NCBI GenBank assembly: GCA_020536535.1
Contig: JAHLWZ010000133.1
Location: 1-44,092, forward strand
Length of the DNA stretch: 44,092 nucleotides
Direction: 5' to 3'
DNA from: Pelomyxa schiedti
Taxonomy: Eukaryota; Protista; Evosea
Below are positions 4,401-14,320 of the stretch, piece after piece. Both the position numbers and the translations under genes were made by a program. Under the pieces are notes generated by a model that ran no database searches, was not told where the DNA came from, and worked only from the letters and a program-made list of their open reading frames with translations. Within the stretch, counting starts at the first letter, position 1. The number at the start of each line of letters is the position of its first letter.

Positions 4401-6873
4401 ACAATAGAGTTCCACACATTAATACAAAGAACCCTTTTCCACAACCCAAATTTGTGGATTGGCACACCACAAGGGATATATACCTGTGATATAAATGTAA
4501 GCTTAGTCTTTTTATCGTGAGTATTTAACGTTTCCAATAGTCCCGAAAAATTACGGAACAACCTCGAGAAAAGAACTCTGTGACAGCAATGGTCTATGTG
4601 AGAGGGAGAAATGTGGCTTCAGATGAAATTTGGACAGCACACGCAAATAATTCAATTGTTGTATGGGATGCAGTGGTGTGTATCTCCTTCCCTCCCTCTT
4701 CTGTATTCCCACTGTCAACAGCAAAAAACACTTGCAACCAAATTTTCTGCAGTTCGAGTTCAGGATTTACTATGCATTGGGCAACGAGTTTGGAGTTGCT
4801 CTTTAGATAAGGTAACTTAACTGTAAATGCAAATGATGTAACCAGTTTTAATTATTTTTTTAAAAAGGCCATCAGAGTGTGGGATGTGAGGGTATGCACC
4901 CCTTAAAAGATTTGTTTACTTTATCTGAGCTTATCAGACCAGAGATTGCTTATCTACAATCTTCAATGGGCACTCAGGGTTCATGACCTGCCTATTACTA
5001 GTGCCTGCTCGTCTCAACTCTTCCATATGGAGCGGTATTTTTTATTTGGTCAAATATGATTTCACCTCATTTTTTTTAAAAAGCATCTGACGATCGAAAG
5101 ATCTGCGTTTGGGAAACTCATTTCGGAAGTCATGACTTCCAACATCATACGTTGAAAGTGAACTCACATTGTACTGTTTGCTACAAGTCTATTGGACAAG
5201 GAAAAACTGCTTACCAATGCAGAGGTTGGTTTCACACTCAGAATTATATCAGGCATCTAACAAAATATCTATACAGTGTGCACTGAAGTTTATGTACATC
5301 CTAAATGTGTACCACTGGTTCCTCCCAATGACTTGTGCATACCAGTACTGCATGCCATAAAAATACCCTCCGAGGCGTTGAGACTCAAAGCAACACCTCC
5401 GCTCTCTCCGGCTCCTACACGAGCAACGTCTAATGGCGATTTACACACTTTCCTACGATTAAGTTCAGAGGGCAAACGCCCACCCCTATCAACAATACAA
5501 TCAATCCCATCCCCTTCTAGTGTTCCCACCAGCACCCTCGTTAACATACCACCTCCCACCACACCTCCACCCAATACCACTAATGGCAGTAGTAGTGGAA
5601 CTACATCAGGAAGCAACTGGGAAGGAAGTACCAGTAGTAGCAACTGTAGCACTTACGGCGGCAGTACTGGTGCTAATGTTGTCACCGATTCCTTTTTGCG
5701 TGAGTTCAAAGAAAATCCAGAGAGTGCTGTACAAAAACTTGTAGTAGACAACAATGCCAAATCTGTGAGTTCCAGCTAGAACTTTACACCAACTTAAGCA
5801 AACCTGTAGATTGCACAACTTCTTGTGGATAATTCTTCAACACTAGACAGAGTGGCATTAAGTGATTACCTCTCCGATAGAACTGATGTGTTACATGAAT
5901 TTGCACAGCTCCAAGACTTTTCCATCTTAGATTTTGAGATGGCCCTGAGGCGTTGGGTTGGCCTCTTTATTCCCCCTAGATCTTCCCAGAAGATGGAAGC
6001 TGTATTACATGAGTTCGCGCAACATGCCTATGCTACACTTCCAGAGCGCGACATGTTTTCCGAACCTGAAGTCATCCGAGTTTTGGCCACTGATTACTTG
6101 GCGCTGAATTCCTCTCTTCACGCACCACAAACTGTATTTAGAACTTCAATGCAAAAATGGGTAGAAACGCACACTACCGTCAACAATACAGAATTGCCCA
6201 GGTTTCATCGATCACTTGAATTTGAAAAACCTTAGCGATAACAGAGACTTCCTGGAGCATCTTTACAATCAACTTTTGGACTGCCAACTTGATCCTATGA
6301 ATCTGGCTCAGTCACCCATTATGCAAGGCATGCTCACAAAGAAAGGCAATGTTACAAATAGCCCTAAGTGGTGTGTGCTCACACGCACACAACTGAACAT
6401 TTTCAAAACAGCCAAGGCATGTGAAACCCCCAACTCTCAATCAATACAACTCCCCAGCTCTAACTAACACCGAACTCCCATTAACCCTCCAGGCACCCAT
6501 GGCTGACTACATGCTTCTTACACACACACTCGCAGCGAAACGAAACACACCCACCACCATAATCCTCCTCACGCCATCATCAACCACCGCGCTCTTCCTC
6601 CTTTGTAAATCAGTCTACACCGCCAATGCGTGGATGCGTGCACTGACTGCCGCATCAGCAGCCACATCACACATATTCACAGCACTCCCACCGCCTTCCC
6701 CCTCGACCTCTCCCTCACCTTCACCCTCGGCAGTACCTACTCCACCTTCAACACACACCCACACACTCCCTTTACCAACAAGTGCAACTCCACTGTCACC
6801 CTCACCTTCTTATAGGCATTCCTCCCACTCGCGGTCACATTCACGGGATGGAGGTAGAGACAACAAGGGGTGA
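1459..6873 (+). CDS. Multi-exon coiled-coil / proline-rich / WD40 / Sec7-like / PH protein (5' end probably missing)
   Basis: Coiled-coil exons 1.5-2.5 kb; Pro-rich ORF 2766-3789; WD-type repeats (SGHSRPI..LKIWAVD, GHSGFMTCL..ICVWE); Sec7 helices (LDRVALSDYL, LRRWVGLFIPPRSSQKMEAVLHEFA, LALNSSLHAP); PH-like QGMLTKKG..KWCVLTRTQLNIFK..NAWMRAL; stop at 6873. Confidence 0.8.
3290..3460 (+). repeat. Coding tandem repeat of 24/27-nt units encoding (P)PVPTPALP
   Basis: Recurring ccagtaccaacccccgcactgcc units in the Pro-rich exon; boundaries approximate. Confidence 0.85.
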
Positions 6874-7018: not shown

Positions 7019-10000
7019 TCACAAACGCTTATTGGAGGTGGCATTGCTAATAGCAGCCGCAGCAGCATCAGAACGGGTTTGCTGCCGTATTCTCAGAGCG
7101 GGCTGGGATGCACTGGGGCTGGGAATAGGACTAGGTGTTGCAGTGGGATCAGAAAGTGGTGTGGTTGTGCTGGCAGAGGGCGTGCGGTATCTCTCCACGT
7201 TCACAACGGCGTCAAGTTGTGCGGCTTGTTCACTGAAGTTCCGGCCGATTGTGGGGCCGTGAACGCGATACATATAGCGTTGTGCGGCGCGGGTCTCGAG
7301 CTGAGCTTCTTCGTAATGACCTTGCTATAGGCGGGAATCAGTAAAACGAGTGAAGAGAAGTGGTAAGGGAGAACCTTAGCTAATTTGGCAGCGTGGTGCC
7401 TGAAGTGATCCCCGATTACAGTTGCATCAGCTTGATGTTCGGCTTCCTGTCGGCTCTCGGTAACTGCCACTTTTTCAGTTGTGACTCGGAGAAAGATTGC
7501 TCCATTGGGTTTTGTGTATAGGAGCTGCACTTGGAAAGGTACTTCAGCTGGAGCGTTGACTGCATCACCCGAGGTTACTGGAGGAGCTGCAGCTGTATCG
7601 GGTTTCTGAGTAGCCGAGGTGGTTGCTGTACTACTGACGCCCTGGGATCCTTCAGATGGGGTGGGTTCCGCATTTGTACTCGCTGGTTGTACTAAGGTTT
7701 CAGGGGTTGTTTGTGTGGATGTGGTGGCTGGGGGAATATCTGCAGGCGTTGTCGTTGAAGTAGTAACTGGGGGAGTATCTGCAGGCGTTGTAGTTGAAAT
7801 GGTGTCTGATGAAGATGTTGAGGTGGTCTCTGACTTGACAGCAGAGATGGGAGTGTCTTGCGTGGGCGGAGTGATCCCCGTGGCGGGCTGTGCTGATACA
7901 GCGGTTGCAACTTGGGTCTTGGGCCTGAAGGAATAAGAGAAAGTGCACTCACTGGCAGTGGTTACATTACCCTAAAACTTGTAAACATTGGAAAAGGGGG
8001 AAAAATGATACAAACCAGATCTCTCACGAGCCAGAAACGTTGCTCGTTTTCGTCATCCATTTCACCACGGAACCTGAGCGACCGATGAATGAGAACCATT
8101 GCCATCGCCCTAAGGAAAAAAGATGTTAGTGGCATTCCATTTTGAGTCTTTCTCACCCATAGGCAATACTTGAAGGAGCCCCAACGATTGCATTCAATTC
8201 CCCAGTAAGGGAACGGGGATCAACACGGTCAATGGTACCAGATGTCTTTTCTGTAACTGAAGATAAAGTCTCAAGCCTGCAACCATCACCAGTGAGTGAT
8301 AACACTGAAACAACAACTCCTTTCAGGGTGGCTTGTTCTCCTACTTCAGTATAAAACGCTACCATCTCTTGTTCGTTTCCTTCAAGTGTTCCCAGGCCCT
8401 GCTGGGAGTTAAAGGTTGGGATGGTAGGGAGGGGTGACCTGATTTGCAAGGCCATCTGTGCAAACTATTACCTACAGAAGTAAACAAACAAGCATTAAAA
8501 ACAGGGCGCACACTTGGGAACCTGGTGCAGTTCCTGCAATGTTAACACCTAAGATCAATGCAGGTCCCAGAGCAGTGGCACCACTTTCCTCCAGTTCCCA
8601 TAATTTCTTGAGTAAATCTGCTTCAGCCTCTTTGACACTCCTTCCCAAAGCAAATACACCTCCTCCACTTGAGACAGAATTTAGTTCTGCCCAGGAGCAT
8701 AATCTATCACCAGCAACTACCTGTTCAGAACTGCCACAGTCACCAAATACTCTCACCTCATTGCTGAAGGCAATTATTCCCACACGGGAATCTGGTCTCT
8801 CTTGTGCAAGACGTTTAATCTGTGCTTCTATGGCTGCTTGTAAACACTGCAACCTACTCACGTGTGTTACACCACGGCGTTCTCGTGGTAGATATTGACT
8901 CCCATATTCATGGAACCCAGTAGTAAAATCACGAGCTTTATTACGACGTGCTTCACTTCCTTTGATGTTATTCACGCCTTCAATCTTTTTACTTTGAGTA
9001 ACAAATCGATCCACAGGAAACTTACCTCAGAAGTGACACACATAGAGCCACTAACATCCACTACAAATACGATATTACTGCTTGCAGTTGACACTGGTCT
9101 AGGTGGTTCAATGAGATACTCCACACATGAATTTTGTGCAAGTTCATTGACAGCATCTGCGTCAACCATGTTTGGGGCTGCACAGAAGTCACAGCACCAG
9201 TAACTGGTTTTCACTGTGTCATCTACAGGTGGGGCTGCAGCTGAAGTTGACGTTGACGTTGTATTGGACTCTGGTGTGGTGAGGATGATATCATTGACCC
9301 ATGATTTCTTCTCCAGTCGAGGGTGAATTGGTGGTGCGGGAGTAAAATTGGGTCCTAGTGCTGTTGAAAGAGTTATAGCTTGAGCTTCAGAAGGACTGAG
9401 GCGACTAATTTTCGATATGGAGCTCATCATGGTACCACATCTCTTGCAGAGAACGGGATCACCTGTGATGACACTTGCTTCAGAAGCCAGGGTGGCCAGA
9501 TTGAGCTTAAACACATTGACATCTGGAAAAATTAGTGGAGAAAGACAAAAAGTTAGGGTGCCTGTTTTCATTGCTCTGTACGCTCCCGTGCGAGGGGGAG
9601 GAGCCGATTGTGTAGCTTGCAGTTGTCTGAGGGATGCATCCAAGTCTTCTGTTTGGAACATCTCAGTTTCGTCATCATGTAGTCTGACTTCCTTCCTGAC
9701 ATCGAGGACAACAGGTGAAGCTTTAGCATCACATAGTACTCTCACTAGGGAAACAACAGCATCCGTGACATTAGCACCAGTCTTGGCACTGCACTCTGCA
9801 AAAAGCATATTGTGAGCCTCAGCAAAGGCGCGTGCTTCTCTTTGAGGCACAGCACGATCCTCAGTTAAGTCCGATTTCAAGCCCAGTAACATAGCCCGGG
9901 ATTCAGAGCCAGATCTTGCTTGTACCTCATGTAAGAATTGGGTGCATGCATGATCAAAGGTTGCTCTATCGTCAATAGAATAGCACAAGAAGATGCCAGA

Positions 10001-10538
10001 GGCTCCTCTTTATTTGTGTGAGTAATTAATGATACGCCAAGTGCATACCTGTAGTAAGACGAAGTGATAGAACGGAACCTCTCTTGGCCAGCAGTATCCC
10101 TATAAATATGAATTCGAGACGAATAAGAAGAGAGAGTTACATACCATATTTGCAGTTTAACCACACGGTCCCCTACCTGCAAGGAGCGAGATTTCTGGGG
10201 GAAAAAAACTTAGAGGAAAAGCAGTGACTACATCTCAGCATACAAAGTCTATGCCGATAGTCGAGATAAAGGTCTCAGAGAAGAATGTGTCATCACTGCA
10301 AACAGTAAGGGAAAAAAGCAATTAAATCAAGAGTAGGCACCAAAATCGAACGAGGAAGCACGACTTGCCACACTTAGAGTCCCCTAATTGTGGTTTAGAA
10401 AGGTAGTAAACAATAAACAAAAAAAAAAAATTACGGACCCAGCAGAAGCAACTTAAACAACAGATCATAATCCAGACTGGGCGACGCTTGAGTAGCGGTC
10501 GCGGAACGATACGCCTTCTTGCTACCAAACGTAAACAT
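7019..10538 (-). CDS. Rab1-like GTPase fused to a Sec23/24-type Zn finger + VWA + C-terminal module resembling the C-terminal part of cpRAS proteins
   Basis: Spliced frame [75 protein letters not shown], then in the same ORF CKRC..CDFC and [40 protein letters not shown]; stop at 7019. Confidence 0.85.
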
Positions 10539-10636
10539 GTTGTCGTGTTATTTGTCTTTTTTATTTTGTCATTTTGTCGGTTGGGTTTTTAACGACCCCA
10601 AGTTGGGAGGTACGGGGGATTTGAGGAAAGTGGGGG

Positions 10637-12863
10637 CTACGACGAAAAGAGGTGGTTGGTGCGTATGTAGTCGGCGACGTGTGGGTCGATGAATGGGCTG
10701 GTGTCGCCGCCGGTCGCGATGAGATGCCGTACGTGGGTGGAACTGACGTCAGGCAGAGGTGTGCCACCACAGGCAATTGCAACTCGTGTGGGGTGACGAG
10801 AAACAAGCCTCTCTGCCCCGATCTCGGTTGCATTGTAGCCTTCTCTGGCAACACAGAGGCAGGATATTTCTTTGCTGCAAGAATCAAATACTCCTGCAAC
10901 ACTCGGGAAGACATCTATCCCACACACGTATATAACAAGGAACCGGTGCGCGTGCTCTGGAAATGCATCGCGCAACGTGGATAATAGATGTTCAGAAACA
11001 GTATCACAACAAATTTCCATGTATTGGTTGCACTCCCACCTGGAATATTGACGTGAATTACCTTTGTGGAAAAGGAATCTTTACTTGTCACATGATATCC
11101 ATTCATGGCCACTGGTAGCAATATCACACATCTTACATCTGTGTTGGGCACTGGCTCTCTCCTCCTCAAGTCTGAACTTTTTGGCTATATACTTATCATG
11201 AGATGGGGATATGAAACCTCCGACCACAGATAGTCCAGGGCTCCCTTCCAAATGTATCTTGGCAATCTCCATAAGTTGAAGGTGCATGATGTGAGGAGGG
11301 TTAAATGATCCAGTTGTAAGAAGAACTGCAAGTTTGTGATCTGGATGTACTGCGTGTGCGTGTAGCAGTGCCGATATCTTGGTTAATGGAGTTGTTGCAA
11401 GAACATTGTCGCATTCAGATGTGCAGTCTAACAATCGACTTTGATTATGATCTGTTGGTAAATCAAAGGCAATCTTCCTGCATCTCTTGGAGAGAACAGA
11501 GGCATGAAACTGGGATATTAAAAGCGAGGTTTCCACGAAAGAACGGGAGGTTTTTATCAATGGAAGGTATTTTATATGTGAAGCTAGAGATTGAAGCTTA
11601 AACAGCCTGAATAAAAATCAGAGGGGCACCATCTTATGTTTTATACCAATACTGGGACATCAACGGATTGATGAAAAGAGTTGTTCCTTCTGTTCTTTTT
11701 GTTGGGTGGTAATCCCCAAAATGCCCATCCATCGATGCAATAATTGAAGAGCACACCTAAAATACTTAGGGGAAAAAACGGTGAAATAAGTGGCTACAAT
11801 TGAAGGTTGCATGTGGGATGATGCATAATCGTGCGCAGCTCTGAAAGCGCTACCCTCTACTGTGTCTCCCAAAACACTACTACAAGCTAGCAAACCCCCA
11901 TCTTTGATGAGTGTGGCAATATTTTCCAGAACAAGTGTATGAGAAACCGTAAGTTCCACGCCAAACCCGATGGCAGCAAGTGATTTATGCTCATTTGGGA
12001 TACTATCAAGAGTCCAGACAGCCGCAATTGAACTCATATCTATCATGTTGAGTTAGAAGGAGCGCAATACTAACCCAGCATTTGCAATCACCTTCTGCAG
12101 GGGTTCCAAGGTCATCTTCATCTCCAAAGCAAAGGGAGTCTGTTCCACCATCTACCAGCATAATATGGGTAATGCCAAGAGCCGGCACTAAAGCATTTAA
12201 ACTTTCTCGAAGCTGAACAACGCCATTTCGTTTGAAGCAATACACCGGGCAGTGGATCCCCTGGGAATTTTGAGTTGAGAATATCTGCTAGGAATTCGTA
12301 CTTGCTTTTCGAGCCAGCAAGACAAGTGATACTCTGGAAAATACCCGCCATCAGCAAGGGGTGATGCACGATCTACTTTCCCCCTTAAATCGTGCCCCAT
12401 ACGCTCCGCCTTTTTGTACAGCGAAATGGCTGTAGTGAAGTCTCCCTGGGCCTCTGCAGCAGAAGCCTGTTCAAAGAGATCCTCAGCCTGCTGTGTAGTT
12501 TCTCTTAGGCAGATCAATTACAAAGCTGTAGCAGCTCCATTTTTTTTTTAAATCAGGTTGTAAATACTTGTAGTTCTCGGGGTGCAAGAGCGTAGACGAA
12601 GGCGTCACCTCCACACAATCGCCGAATCTACGGCCGGTCACTTCGTCGACCAAGGAGAAACTGAGCGATCCCAAAACAACGCCAAAAGCGGATGTCGCAT
12701 TTTGAGACCGCGCCTCCATGGCTCTGTACACCATAGGCAGTGCACAAAACACGTCATAGCCGCCACCACAGCCCATAGCCAGAACCACAGGATGTTGTCG
12801 TGCCGCAGTCGTACTGCCGTCGCCAGGGGTGCTACAACACGCACGTAGGAGTAGATTCTCCAT
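10637..12863 (-). CDS. DUF1152-family domain fused to an NMNAT/NadD-like nucleotidyltransferase
   Basis: N-part: MGCGGGYDVFCALP, GSLSFS, YFPEYHLSCWL, LVDGGTDSL..GTPAEDMSSIAAV, GFGVE, GHFGDYH..INPLMSQYW. C-part: TGSFNPPHIMH, GGFISPSHDKY, CDKWE, VCGID, DVSSTHVR. Joined in frame across a 40-nt GT-AG intron (11646-11607). Confidence 0.8.
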
Positions 12864-13015
12864 CAGACACGAGCGCCTTGATTTTGATTCGCCGACGAAC
12901 AACGCCCAGTATTTCACAGGCTACGGTGATCTAAGTTCCCTGCAAACCTGATGTCCATCAAACGAGATTTGGAAAACGAAAAGGTGTTTCACAAAACAAA
13001 GAAAAATCATCGCAG

Positions 13016-14320
13016 ATGCGGATGCGGTTGGGGCTCGTACTGGTGGGTGTTGTGCTGGGGTGCGAATACAGGCCGACAGTACTGTGGCATGGAATGGGGG
13101 ATAGTTGTTGCGATCCTTTGAGGTGATTATATCGTGAACGTTAAATTGTACTAATACGCTCTTTTGTGTAGTTTGGGAAAAATACAACGAGAGATCGAGT
13201 CCGCTTTACCTGGCATTTATGTGTACAGGTATTAGTCGTGATTGTTTTTCCACCTAGTTCCTCACGCTGTTGAAGTATTGAAATAGGAGAGTCTACTATT
13301 GAAGACATGATGAATTCTTTTTTCATGAATTCCAACGACCAAATTGACACTGTTTGCGCACTCTTGAAAAATGACACTCGTCTTCAAAATGGTTTCAACG
13401 CTGTCGGTTTTTCCCAGGTAAGTCGTTGAAGAAAAGGAAAGATATTTTTACTTGCCGGATAGGGAGGGCAATTCCTGCGCGCATACGTAGAGAGATGCAA
13501 CGATCCTCCTGTATTCAACCTAGTAACTCTTGGTGGGCAACATCAAGGAGTTTTTGGATATCCTGGCTGCCCAATGGACTATGACCCAAAGTACGTGATT
13601 ACTTTTTGTACTCTTGATTCACTAAAAGAAGGGTATGCGAACTTCTACGACGCCTCATGGATCTTGGAGCTTATTTGCCTTTTGTACAAGAGCACTTGGT
13701 GCGTTTGTTTTTTTACAGCTTCCTCCTCACCATCGGTAGGCCCAGGCGAACTATTGGCATGACCCTTACCTCGACTTGTACATTGACGGTTGCACGTTCC
13801 TTCCGTATATTAACAATGAACCCTCATTGGCGAGCAATCCAAATGCTCAGCAGAACAAAGAACACATGCTAACTCTGAACAATTTCGTCATGGTTTTGTT
13901 TGAGAACGATTCAGGTTAGATGGTGGTGGCTATTTTTTTCCTCTTATTTTTTTTCCCAGTTGTCATCCCTCGGGAATCTGAGGTTGGATCCTCTCAAAGA
14001 AAACCGATTTAACAATTATAGTGGTTTGGATTTTACGCAAATGGTGAAGACTCTGAGGTTATCCCCCTCCGTGAAACGGACCTGTACATAGAGGTACCAG
14101 TGAAACTCACCTCTACTGGACTAACGTCAAAATAGGATTGGCTTGGCCTTCAAACCCTGGATAAGGTTATTTCCCAAATACCAATCTTTTTAACTTTTAC
14201 ACGCAACAGGAAGGAAAACTCATAGAGCTATCAACTGAAGGAGACCACCTCGACTTTACACTGGAATGGTTTGATGACACCATCATTTACCCTTATTTGA
14301 ACAACACCCTTCCGTGCTGA
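13016..14320 (+). CDS. PPT1: Palmitoyl-protein thioesterase 1 (secreted/lysosomal)
   Basis: Signal-like N-terminus, then [60 protein letters not shown]; stop at 14320. Confidence 0.95.

Follow-up and report, generated by a model that had tools for sequence, protein, structure and literature searches.

The window analysed here is a stretch of 44,092 nucleotides of Pelomyxa schiedti DNA (contig JAHLWZ010000133.1, positions 1 to 44,092, assembly GCA_020536535.1), and its minus strand carries between positions 12863 and 10637 a gene in which a domain of the uncharacterised family DUF1152 is fused to a nicotinamide mononucleotide adenylyltransferase (NMNAT) of nicotinamide adenine dinucleotide (NAD) synthesis. 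The open segments of this interval are spread over three frames, and a preliminary description of the window, made from the sequence alone, had proposed that several introns, among them one of 40 nt splitting a Trp codon as TG/G, join them into one transcript. We read the splice joints over 10300-13300 from contigs of three single-cell RNA-seq runs of one sample (X1, X2 and X3 below) and fixed the intron bounds after resolving equivalent cut positions. All six introns are GT..AG and each was seen as an RNA joint; the proposed 40-nt intron is a real one, its joint (11646-11607) occurring in contigs of three runs. The gene is laid out as follows.

12863-10637, minus strand: whole coding sequence of the DUF1152-NMNAT fusion, from splice joints, stop-free spliced translation and database identity
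12863 and 10639-10637, minus strand: start ATG (at 12863) and TAG stop
12863-12568, 12503-12302, 12260-12092, 12039-11798, 11756-11647, 11606-11085 and 11039-10637, minus strand: seven exons, the last including the stop
12504-12567, minus strand: intron 1, 64 nt, GT..AG, joint in X1 with a shorter side of 23 nt, needed by the frame
12261-12301, minus strand: intron 2, 41 nt, GT..AG, joint in X1 and X2
12040-12091, minus strand: intron 3, 52 nt, GT..AG, joint in X1 and X2
11757-11797, minus strand: intron 4, 41 nt, GT..AG, joint in X1, X2 and X3
11607-11646, minus strand: intron 5, 40 nt, GT..AG, splitting the Trp340 codon, joint in X1, X2 and X3
11040-11084, minus strand: intron 6, within the NMNAT half, 45 nt, GT..AG, joint in X1, X2 and X3

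Joined, the seven exons give 1944 nt or 647 codons with no internal stop. RNA contigs X1 (1657 nt, spanning 12590-10605) and X3 (1255 nt, spanning 11990-10610) both run across the junction between the two halves, and no in-frame Met residue of the junction exon (in HIMHLQLMEIAK) precedes the end of the GSFNPPH motif, which leaves an independent NMNAT nowhere to start in this exon. The locus hence carries one fusion gene with a single spliced mRNA and one open reading frame (ORF), as the preliminary description had read it, and not two. With the junction exon as query, exhaustive HMMER searching retrieved the database protein P0001, 647 aa long and 100% identical to our model; the protein and its Pfam architecture are already public, under the name "cell surface glycoprotein [Pelomyxa schiedti]", which is a misnomer. 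A further, optional splice of 46 nt (11172-11217, minus strand, GT..AG) lies inside the NMNAT exon in X1 alone, while X2 and X3 read through it. Since this splice shifts the frame and removes the ISPSHDKY motif, it probably reflects unproductive or noisy splicing. At position 12492, within the insert region of exon 2, the window has T and the near-identical DNA contig X4, which is probably made from the source assembly's own data, has G.

The C-terminal half and the linker that leads into it comprise the following features.

11339-11452, minus strand: linker between the domains (about residues 392-429), in the same exon and without a stop, partly conserved in P0002 and P0003, two fusion products described below
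10640-11338, minus strand: NMNAT domain (about residues 430-647), from matches to PF01467, TIGR00482 and NMNATs in the PDB
11282-11311, minus strand: nucleotidyltransferase signature GSFNPPHIMH (residues 443-452)
11189-11221, minus strand: GGFISPSHDKY, aligning with GGYMSPVNDAY of the solved NMNAT 9rpk
10727-10744, minus strand: SSTHVR near the C-terminus, aligning with the Ser-Ser (ISSSRLR) of 9rpk

In a Pfam search with the whole protein this half matched CTP_transf_like (PF01467) with an E-value of 1e-9. Its best solved-structure matches are all adenylyltransferases of nicotinamide mononucleotide (NMN) or nicotinic acid mononucleotide (NaMN), with 9rpk at E 1.5e-12, and human NMNAT1 and NMNAT3 match it at E 1e-8 to 1e-9. 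GSFNPPHIMH, found at the place given for it in the preliminary description (11311-11282), aligns with GSFNPPTFMH and GSFNPITNMH of solved NMNATs, so that the GxFxPxHxxH signature is intact, as are the ISPxxDxY and SSTxxR motifs; the SSTHVR site we take to be the SxTxxR consensus of NMNATs. All NCBIfam matches of the C-terminal half are nicotinate/nicotinamide-nucleotide adenylyltransferase models, the match to TIGR00482 (E 6e-21) scoring 75.3 bits and thus under the equivalog cut-off of 112.45 of a model that was trained on prokaryotic NadD/NMNAT. Judged by these structure and NCBIfam matches together with the intact motifs, the C-terminal half is therefore an NMNAT of eukaryote type and not a cytidylyltransferase of other specificity, which agrees with its initial assignment.

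The N-terminal half contains a complete DUF1152 domain with an additional insert.

11453-12794, minus strand: DUF1152 domain (about residues 24-391, introns included), from PF06626, the alignment and the structural model, ending at a C-terminal LP motif
12753-12773, minus strand: GCGGGYD, Gly-rich loop after strand 1 (residues 31-37), near-invariant in the family and free of His
12302-12503, minus strand: exon 2 (residues 99-166), with a helical-hairpin (TPR/MIT-like) insert of about 50-55 residues, followed by YFPEY
12132-12152, minus strand: DGGTDSL (residues 203-209), invariant in the family
11939-11962, minus strand: degenerate loop GVEL--TVSH (residues 249-256), family consensus GVDxFHGVSH

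The whole-protein Pfam search matched PF06626 over residues 177-366 (E 2e-14; 54 bits, the cut-off being 27). In an alignment with 34 stand-alone DUF1152 proteins the N-terminal half is collinear end to end, GCGGGYD and the C-terminal LP motif included, at 39-47% identity. Taken over the whole domain, identity to stand-alone proteins of bacteria, archaea and eukaryotes is 35-47% and all the large motifs are shared, and those picked out in the preliminary description (GCGGGYD, YFPEY, DGGTDSL, GTPAED, GHFGDYH and INPLMSQYW) are all present in the spliced product. Searches of Pfam, NCBIfam and the PDB with single exons returned only sub-threshold DUF1152 matches (25.5 bits, just under the cut-off). 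Methyltransferase look-alikes from an ESM Atlas feature search with an 80-aa exon scored below 0.9 and were discarded as fragment noise; the ESM Atlas also holds a DUF1152/DUF6829 cluster. We modelled residues 1-400 with AlphaFold2 from 36 aligned sequences (mean predicted local distance difference test score 85.7, predicted template modelling score 0.85). In this model the exon-2 insert forms two confident helices (102-117 and 121-133), and it has weak TPR/MIT matches in Pfam (E about 4e-3). The insert is not found in any stand-alone member, is present in the Mastigamoeba and L085 fusions described next, and hence appears from its sequence distribution to be specific to Archamoebae.

A search for the same fusion elsewhere found it in other Archamoebae. 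A word search with residues 1-390 retrieved P0151 of Mastigamoeba balamuthi, a protein of 649 aa with both Pfam domains and 46% identity, and a transcript ORF of Mastigella eilhardi (P0002) starts within the DUF1152 tail and runs through the linker into a complete NMNAT. The 150-aa exon product P0003 led to a metagenome contig of 562 kb in ENA (L085), on which tblastn with the Pelomyxa protein placed DUF1152 including the same insert, the linker and NMNAT collinearly on one strand at 4695-6853. This contig belongs to an uncultured Archamoebae-like eukaryote and has an aldehyde dehydrogenase gene downstream of the fusion. The occurrence in these four organisms implies that the fusion is older than the split of their Archamoebae-type lineages, and we take its product to be a true two-module protein with a part in NAD homeostasis that Archamoebae have conserved. 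No other NAD-type DUF1152 fusion was found among proteins of 356-1132 aa, where the only companion of the Archamoebae NMNAT fusion was P0324 (611 aa), in which DUF1152 is joined to a GNAT-type acetyltransferase (PF14542). GNAT genes also flank DUF1152 in Armatimonadota and Abditibacterium (L049, L050 and L054; L004:9066-9635). A reverse-order NMNAT-DUF1152 fusion was not found among NMNAT proteins of 550-650 aa, the C-terminal halves of which have no Pfam match. P0012, P0013, P0021, P0029, P0032, P0040 and others of this size begin with NMNAT and continue for about 300 such unmatched residues; they form another uncharacterised class of NMNAT fusions. Two larger proteins combine NMNAT with NAD synthase, namely P0035 (1375 aa) and P0031 (1186 aa), the latter also with a 2OG-Fe(II) oxygenase and, by eye, a C-terminal phosphoribosyltransferase-like motif.

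In a maximum-likelihood tree, two fused DUF1152 domains of Archamoebae fall into one group with Physarum, Balamuthia and a metagenomic clade (Shimodaira-Hasegawa-like approximate likelihood ratio test, SH-aLRT, 99). The metagenomic clade is eukaryotic by the neighbours of its members L086 and L087 (GLMP, tetraspanin, Frag1 and HECT, all split ORFs), and L047 of this clade, filed as chromosome 10 of a Stappiaceae metagenome-assembled genome (MAG), is therefore probably a eukaryotic contig mis-binned as bacterial. Stand-alone DUF1152 proteins also occur in the amoebozoan Stereomyxa, the sponge Oopsacas and Naegleria, so the family, initially taken to be mostly prokaryotic, is widespread in eukaryotes too. 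Given the well-supported eukaryote-type grouping and these stand-alone eukaryotic members, nothing in the tree suggests that Pelomyxa acquired the domain recently by lateral transfer; the preliminary description had considered lateral transfer as an origin. Two stand-alone paralogues, P0306 and P0319, exist in Pelomyxa itself; both keep the canonical loop as GVDxFHGVNH, and P0306 groups with other Amoebozoa (SH-aLRT 96). The fusion arose from a DUF1152 duplicate. All three Pelomyxa DUF1152 proteins (P0001, P0306 and P0319) are named "cell surface glycoprotein" at NCBI, and the long Ser/Thr/Ala-rich N-terminal tails of P0306 and P0319 are probably the source of that name.

The fused copies have diverged from the stand-alone members to different degrees. 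Of 74 columns conserved at 94% or more in the 34 stand-alone proteins, they keep the following numbers.

Pelomyxa fused copy: 64/74
Mastigamoeba fused copy: 62/74
L085 eukaryote fused copy: 50/74

A two-residue deletion removes the His of GVDxFHGVSH in all three readable fused copies (the Mastigella fragment does not reach this loop and was left out of the count), while this His is present in 34/34 stand-alone members. The invariant Asp of the same loop is replaced by Glu in Pelomyxa and Mastigamoeba, and its Gly by Thr in Pelomyxa. The L085 copy additionally lacks D203, T206, S208, T219, S226, H256, H320, R324 and T325: DGGTDSL has become SGGADFL, H256 is replaced by Pro and GDYH is lost. Since the Pelomyxa copy is without the invariant His and yet keeps 64 of the 74 columns, we consider it a divergent member of DUF1152.

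Evidence on the function of the stand-alone family comes from its bacterial gene neighbourhoods. A pattern scan of one genome per species (185,579 genomes) yielded 398 DUF1152-encoding stretches, which gives about 400 species of bacteria and archaea as a lower bound for the spread of the family, and the best 80 loci were examined; these come from Bacteroidota, Armatimonadota, Abditibacteriota, Planctomycetota, Myxococcota, Verrucomicrobiota, Melainabacteria, Gemmatimonadota, Deinococcota and Pseudomonadota. ORF clustering over the 80 loci gave no universally conserved neighbour, the best cluster being present in 8/80, and no NAD link was seen at the first three loci inspected by hand (Gemmataceae, a deltaproteobacterial MAG and Abditibacterium). 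Among 79 co-directional ORFs within 150 bp, Macro (4) and ADP-ribosylglycohydrolase (ARH; 3) were among the commonest families. By raw count, DUF1152 lies close to NAD-salvage or ADP-ribose genes in 10/80 loci from 3-4 phyla (Verrucomicrobiota, Bacteroidota with Aquimarina, Kapaibacterium and Armatimonadota). An NrtR gene is nearby in six loci and PncA-PncB-NadE or Prs-NadV in four, while four Armatimonadota loci have Macro and GNAT only; an eleventh locus (L044) has a NadE-like ORF alone, within 7 kb. The arrangements are the following.

L009, Verrucomicrobiota: NrtR - ARH - DUF1152 - PncA - PncB - NadE - Tpt1/KptA - cREC-ARH
L057 and L076, Verrucomicrobiota: DUF1152 - ARH - SPFH - NAD-kinase-like, with an NrtR-family ORF just upstream
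L065, Aquimarina: NrtR - Prs-like - deoxyribosyltransferase-like - DUF1152 - Tpt1 - 2OG oxygenase - Metallophos ... NadV
L068, Aquimarina: NrtR - Prs-like - Macro ... NADAR - DUF4291 - DUF4291 - Macro - DUF1152 - small ORF - Tpt1 - 2OG - Metallophos - ORF - NadV
L080, Kapaibacterium: Macro - DUF1152 - small ORF ... NadE - Tpt1 - ARH
L050 and L054, Armatimonadota: GNAT - DUF1152 - Macro
L007, Armatimonadota: DUF1152 - Macro
L021, Armatimonadota: both found by seed search

NrtR, a repressor that responds to ADP-ribose, controls genes for the synthesis and salvage of NAD (PMC2330246), and DUF4291 has recently been proposed to be ADP-ribosyltransferase (ART)-like, with Nudix, Macro, ARH and Tpt1 as neighbours (PMC12522546). 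A link between DUF1152 and NAD genes, on whose presence the preliminary description had staked its reading beforehand, is thus seen in operon-like runs that have NrtR nearby and contain PncA/PncB/NadE or Prs/NadV, and DUF1152 also stands beside Macro, ADP-ribosylglycohydrolase, Tpt1/KptA and NADAR. As genes for Macro, ARH, NrtR and Tpt1 each occur about once per genome, we estimate that their recurrence near DUF1152 is far above chance. The argument from the fusion, a Rosetta-stone argument, hence gains independent support from the bacterial context. Some further features of these neighbourhoods were recorded. The SPFH/Band-7 gene and its weakly NAD-kinase-like companion (E 8e-5) lie at L057:11488-13559 and L076:9313-11374. 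The small ORF after DUF1152 resembles "ADP-ribosylation/crystallin J1" clusters (feature score 0.97), which is a lead only. The 2OG oxygenase family of P0031 is the one that adjoins Tpt1 in the Aquimarina operons. At the Gemmataceae locus, genes for an intein-containing RtcB and Archease (L001:12052-15474) lie 3-6 kb from DUF1152 on the opposite strand.

We then compared the DUF1152 model with solved structures. With VIA-align the best matches were 3dfi (Z 11.6), 3we7 (10.4), 2ixd (10.0), 1uan (9.5), 5bmo (9.4), 5cgz (9.2) and 1q7t (9.1), and all seven are LmbE/PIG-L-like proteins (Dbv21, diacetylchitobiose deacetylase, BC1534, TT1542, LnmX, GalB and MshB). These matches cover 181-212 aligned residues, and the next rows have Z 7.1 (UDP-GlcNAc 2-epimerase, CARF and GT-B). 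The Foldseek check suggested in the preliminary description likewise ranked LmbE-type deacetylases highest by probability (0.6-0.85), at E-values above 1e-3. At the sequence level, the family profile gave only chance-level matches to PDB sequences, the best being a SIS-domain protein over the Gly-rich loop (E 0.14), and the whole protein has no match to the PIG-L Pfam family (PF02585). LmbE enzymes, we assume, carry a metal-binding His in the loop that follows strand 1, and their Zn site is formed by His-Asp-His from the (A/P)HPDD and HxxH motifs. The corresponding DUF1152 loop is GxGGGxD (GCGGGYD here), which is free of His and departs from this pattern; DUF1152 may have an alternative metal site. 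Since the fold match comes without a sequence relationship, a PIG-L match or the His, we treat DUF1152 as having a predicted LmbE-like fold and not as a member of the LmbE family. A SIS (phosphosugar-binding) Pfam match is recorded for P0314, the DUF1152 protein of the sponge Oopsacas minuta; together with the non-significant SIS match of the family profile it hints that the Gly-rich loop binds a sugar phosphate.

Next to the fusion gene the window has two further features.

13120-13274, plus strand: RNA contig with two GT..AG joints, 49 and 47 nt being skipped; the start of a divergently transcribed neighbour with introns is hence placed shortly upstream of the fusion gene
9877-10538, minus strand: Rab-type GTPase motifs (LLLLG..) in split ORFs directly downstream of the fusion gene

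With a probability of about 0.55, we favour the reading that the fused DUF1152 is a ligand-sensing or recruiting module, more than a turnover enzyme, that couples NMNAT to NAD breakdown. The NMNAT module would join NMN or NaMN to ATP to give NAD or nicotinic acid adenine dinucleotide (NaAD), and the N-terminal module is a divergent DUF1152 paralogue. In free-living bacteria, stand-alone DUF1152 would most likely be a hydrolase-type enzyme acting on a soluble, ribose-phosphate-containing by-product of NAD consumption, a chemistry to which the fold points, as do the acidic and His residues among the family's many invariant positions (Asp, Glu, His, Ser and Thr). Candidate ligands are derivatives of ADP-ribose; as Tpt1/KptA, Macro, ARH, NADAR and an ADP-ribose-sensing regulator lie nearby, the ligand would most likely be ADP-ribose-1''-phosphate, the 1'',2''-cyclic phosphate or O-acyl-ADP-ribose. 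In the fusion, DUF1152 would bind the same class of ligand beside NMNAT and would thereby couple NAD resynthesis to NAD breakdown, either allosterically or by recruitment. Because the fused copies have lost the His and changed the Asp to Glu while keeping most positions, because one lineage has decayed further and because canonical paralogues are present, sensing is favoured over turnover: this is the pattern that might be expected of a domain which still binds and no longer converts its ligand, by analogy with the Nudix domain of NrtR. What the data show are the gene, its transcript, the identity of both domains, the conserved fusion, the predicted fold, the bacterial gene contexts and the missing His; from these we infer the ligand class, a hydrolase chemistry for stand-alone proteins and a sensing role for the copy in the fusion. 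The preliminary description had placed DUF1152 in the pathway of its partner, and the bacterial context speaks for this placement, whereas the simple version with two consecutive enzymes is weakened by the lost His and the stand-alone paralogues; as to the pyridine-nucleotide substrate envisaged there, the context points to ADP-ribose derivatives at least as much as to pyridine mononucleotides. We would also raise, more tentatively, a broader proposal in which DUF1152 takes a so far overlooked part in the recycling of ADP-ribose and NAD in organisms as diverse as bacteria, sponges and amoebae, the stand-alone members hydrolysing, in a step that is still lacking, an ADP-ribose derivative which Tpt1/KptA-, sirtuin- or ART-type enzymes produce and the Archamoebae duplicate serving as a sensor that gates NMNAT.

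Several observations weigh against the sensing reading. The structural match to LmbE-like proteins is moderate (root mean square deviation 3.4-4.5 Å, 6-12% identity), Foldseek of the DUF1152 model against the PDB found nothing at E <= 1e-3, and any assignment of active-site residues is a guess. In 70/80 bacterial loci DUF1152 has no NAD or ADP-ribose neighbour, and the positive loci are phylogenetically clumped and perhaps amount to 3-5 independent arrangements. The GNAT fusion and the GNAT neighbours hint at an acetyl chemistry that has no place in the proposed scheme. A search of the accessible literature returned no paper naming DUF1152, PF06626 or IPR010581, and the family is not named in the NrtR regulon study or in a recent NAD-ADPr survey. 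Pelomyxa and Mastigamoeba moreover keep DGGTDSL, GTPxED, PSIVCSS and GxFGDYH, which fits a still-active enzyme too. If the fused DUF1152 is indeed active, it could catalyse the step just before or after NMNAT and hand its product over, possibly as an amidohydrolase converting NMN to NaMN (a PncC analogue) or as a hydrolase that frees a precursor from an ADP-ribose or NAD derivative. This explanation is the main rival, and we think it less probable than sensing. It fits the 64/74 and 62/74 conserved columns of these two copies, which include all the large motifs, the amide or ester hydrolase or hydratase activities of known LmbE-fold enzymes (by the titles of the structural matches), the position of DUF1152 directly before PncA-PncB-NadE in L009 and the general habit of NMNAT fusions, such as NadR and NadM-Nudix, to join consecutive steps. 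However, a His conserved in 34/34 stand-alone members is deleted in the three readable fused copies and an invariant Asp is changed, and the L085 lineage maintains the fusion although its copy lacks D203, T206, S208, H256, H320 and R324. Canonical paralogues coexist in Pelomyxa, and no neighbour pattern is specific to NMN deamidation.

An origin of the whole pattern outside NAD metabolism appears unlikely. DUF1152 would then be an LmbE-like sugar deacetylase or another carbohydrate enzyme, and its fusion and gene contexts would be incidental; the closeness of the fold to GlcNAc-type deacetylases, the many bacterial loci without NAD context, a GH20 hexosaminidase-like neighbour of DUF1152 at one locus and the NCBI name of P0001 would be in line with this. 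But the fusion is kept in at least four Archamoebae-type organisms, and Macro, ARH, Tpt1, NADAR, NrtR, PncA/B, NadE and NadV recur as contexts in several phyla; the protein has no PIG-L Pfam match and no His in the loop that follows strand 1, and the NCBI name is probably due to the paralogue tails. Even less credible, to the point of being negligible, is a misreading of two neighbouring genes as one by annotation or assembly. It is true that all three RNA runs derive from one sample and that contigs were read in place of raw reads, a contig over two genes being by itself no proof of one transcript. Yet a single exon carries the continuous frame across the junction without a stop or a usable internal start, all six splice joints are correctly phased, and three independent sources (a genome annotation, a transcriptome and a metagenome contig) show the same architecture.

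The main value of this analysis lies in a functional lead for a widespread DUF, the first testable function for the family. Turnover of NAD yields ADP-ribose derivatives, and to our knowledge several steps of ADP-ribose clean-up and recycling are without assigned enzymes, especially outside yeast and mammals. Two independent lines, the Archamoebae-wide NMNAT fusion and the recurrent bacterial placement, point to the same pathway and give a short, concrete list of substrates. If the fused copy is a sensor, NAD synthesis would be matched to NAD consumption in a novel manner, here within anaerobic protists that are relatives of Entamoeba, and NMNAT gated in this manner would be the first to be regulated directly by a fused pseudo-enzyme domain.

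When compared to characterised systems, each module has close or distant relatives. The NMNAT half resembles eukaryotic NMNATs (human NMNAT1-3 and 9rpk) over the whole catalytic domain and in the three motifs, and as far as can be told from sequence it differs from them by about 430 extra N-terminal residues (DUF1152 and the linker). In relation to stand-alone DUF1152 (PF06626; bacteria, archaea and eukaryotes), the fused copy adds the hairpin insert, the two-residue deletion and the NMNAT extension. With the LmbE/PIG-L proteins (MshB, Dbv21, the Orf2* teicoplanin deacetylases, diacetylchitobiose deacetylase, TT1542 and the GalB hydratase) DUF1152 shares a Rossmann-like core and conserved residues at the C-terminal strand ends, whereas it is about 100 residues larger, has different conserved motifs and shows no sequence similarity. 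That NMNAT is fused to enzymes of salvage or of ADP-ribose metabolism is known from other cases: NadR combines NMNAT with a ribosylnicotinamide kinase and NadM-Nudix combines it with an ADP-ribose pyrophosphatase, while CinA joins a COG1058 ADP-ribose pyrophosphatase to the PncC NMN deamidase. They share the logic of uniting a NAD-salvage step with a domain for a neighbouring metabolite in one chain, this metabolite being ADP-ribose in NadM-Nudix and CinA. The partner found here is new and uncharacterised: it belongs to a family of LmbE-like fold and has lost an invariant residue, and the fusion is eukaryotic and restricted to Archamoebae. A precedent for the proposed change of role is NrtR, in which a Nudix-derived fold of ADP-ribose-handling enzymes has lost catalysis and serves as a ligand sensor controlling NAD synthesis (PMC2330246). 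Six of the bacterial loci have an NrtR-family gene immediately upstream of DUF1152 or of the run that contains it. The target of NrtR is transcription, which it reaches by a DNA-binding domain, whereas the sensor proposed for Archamoebae would act on the enzyme to which it is fused.

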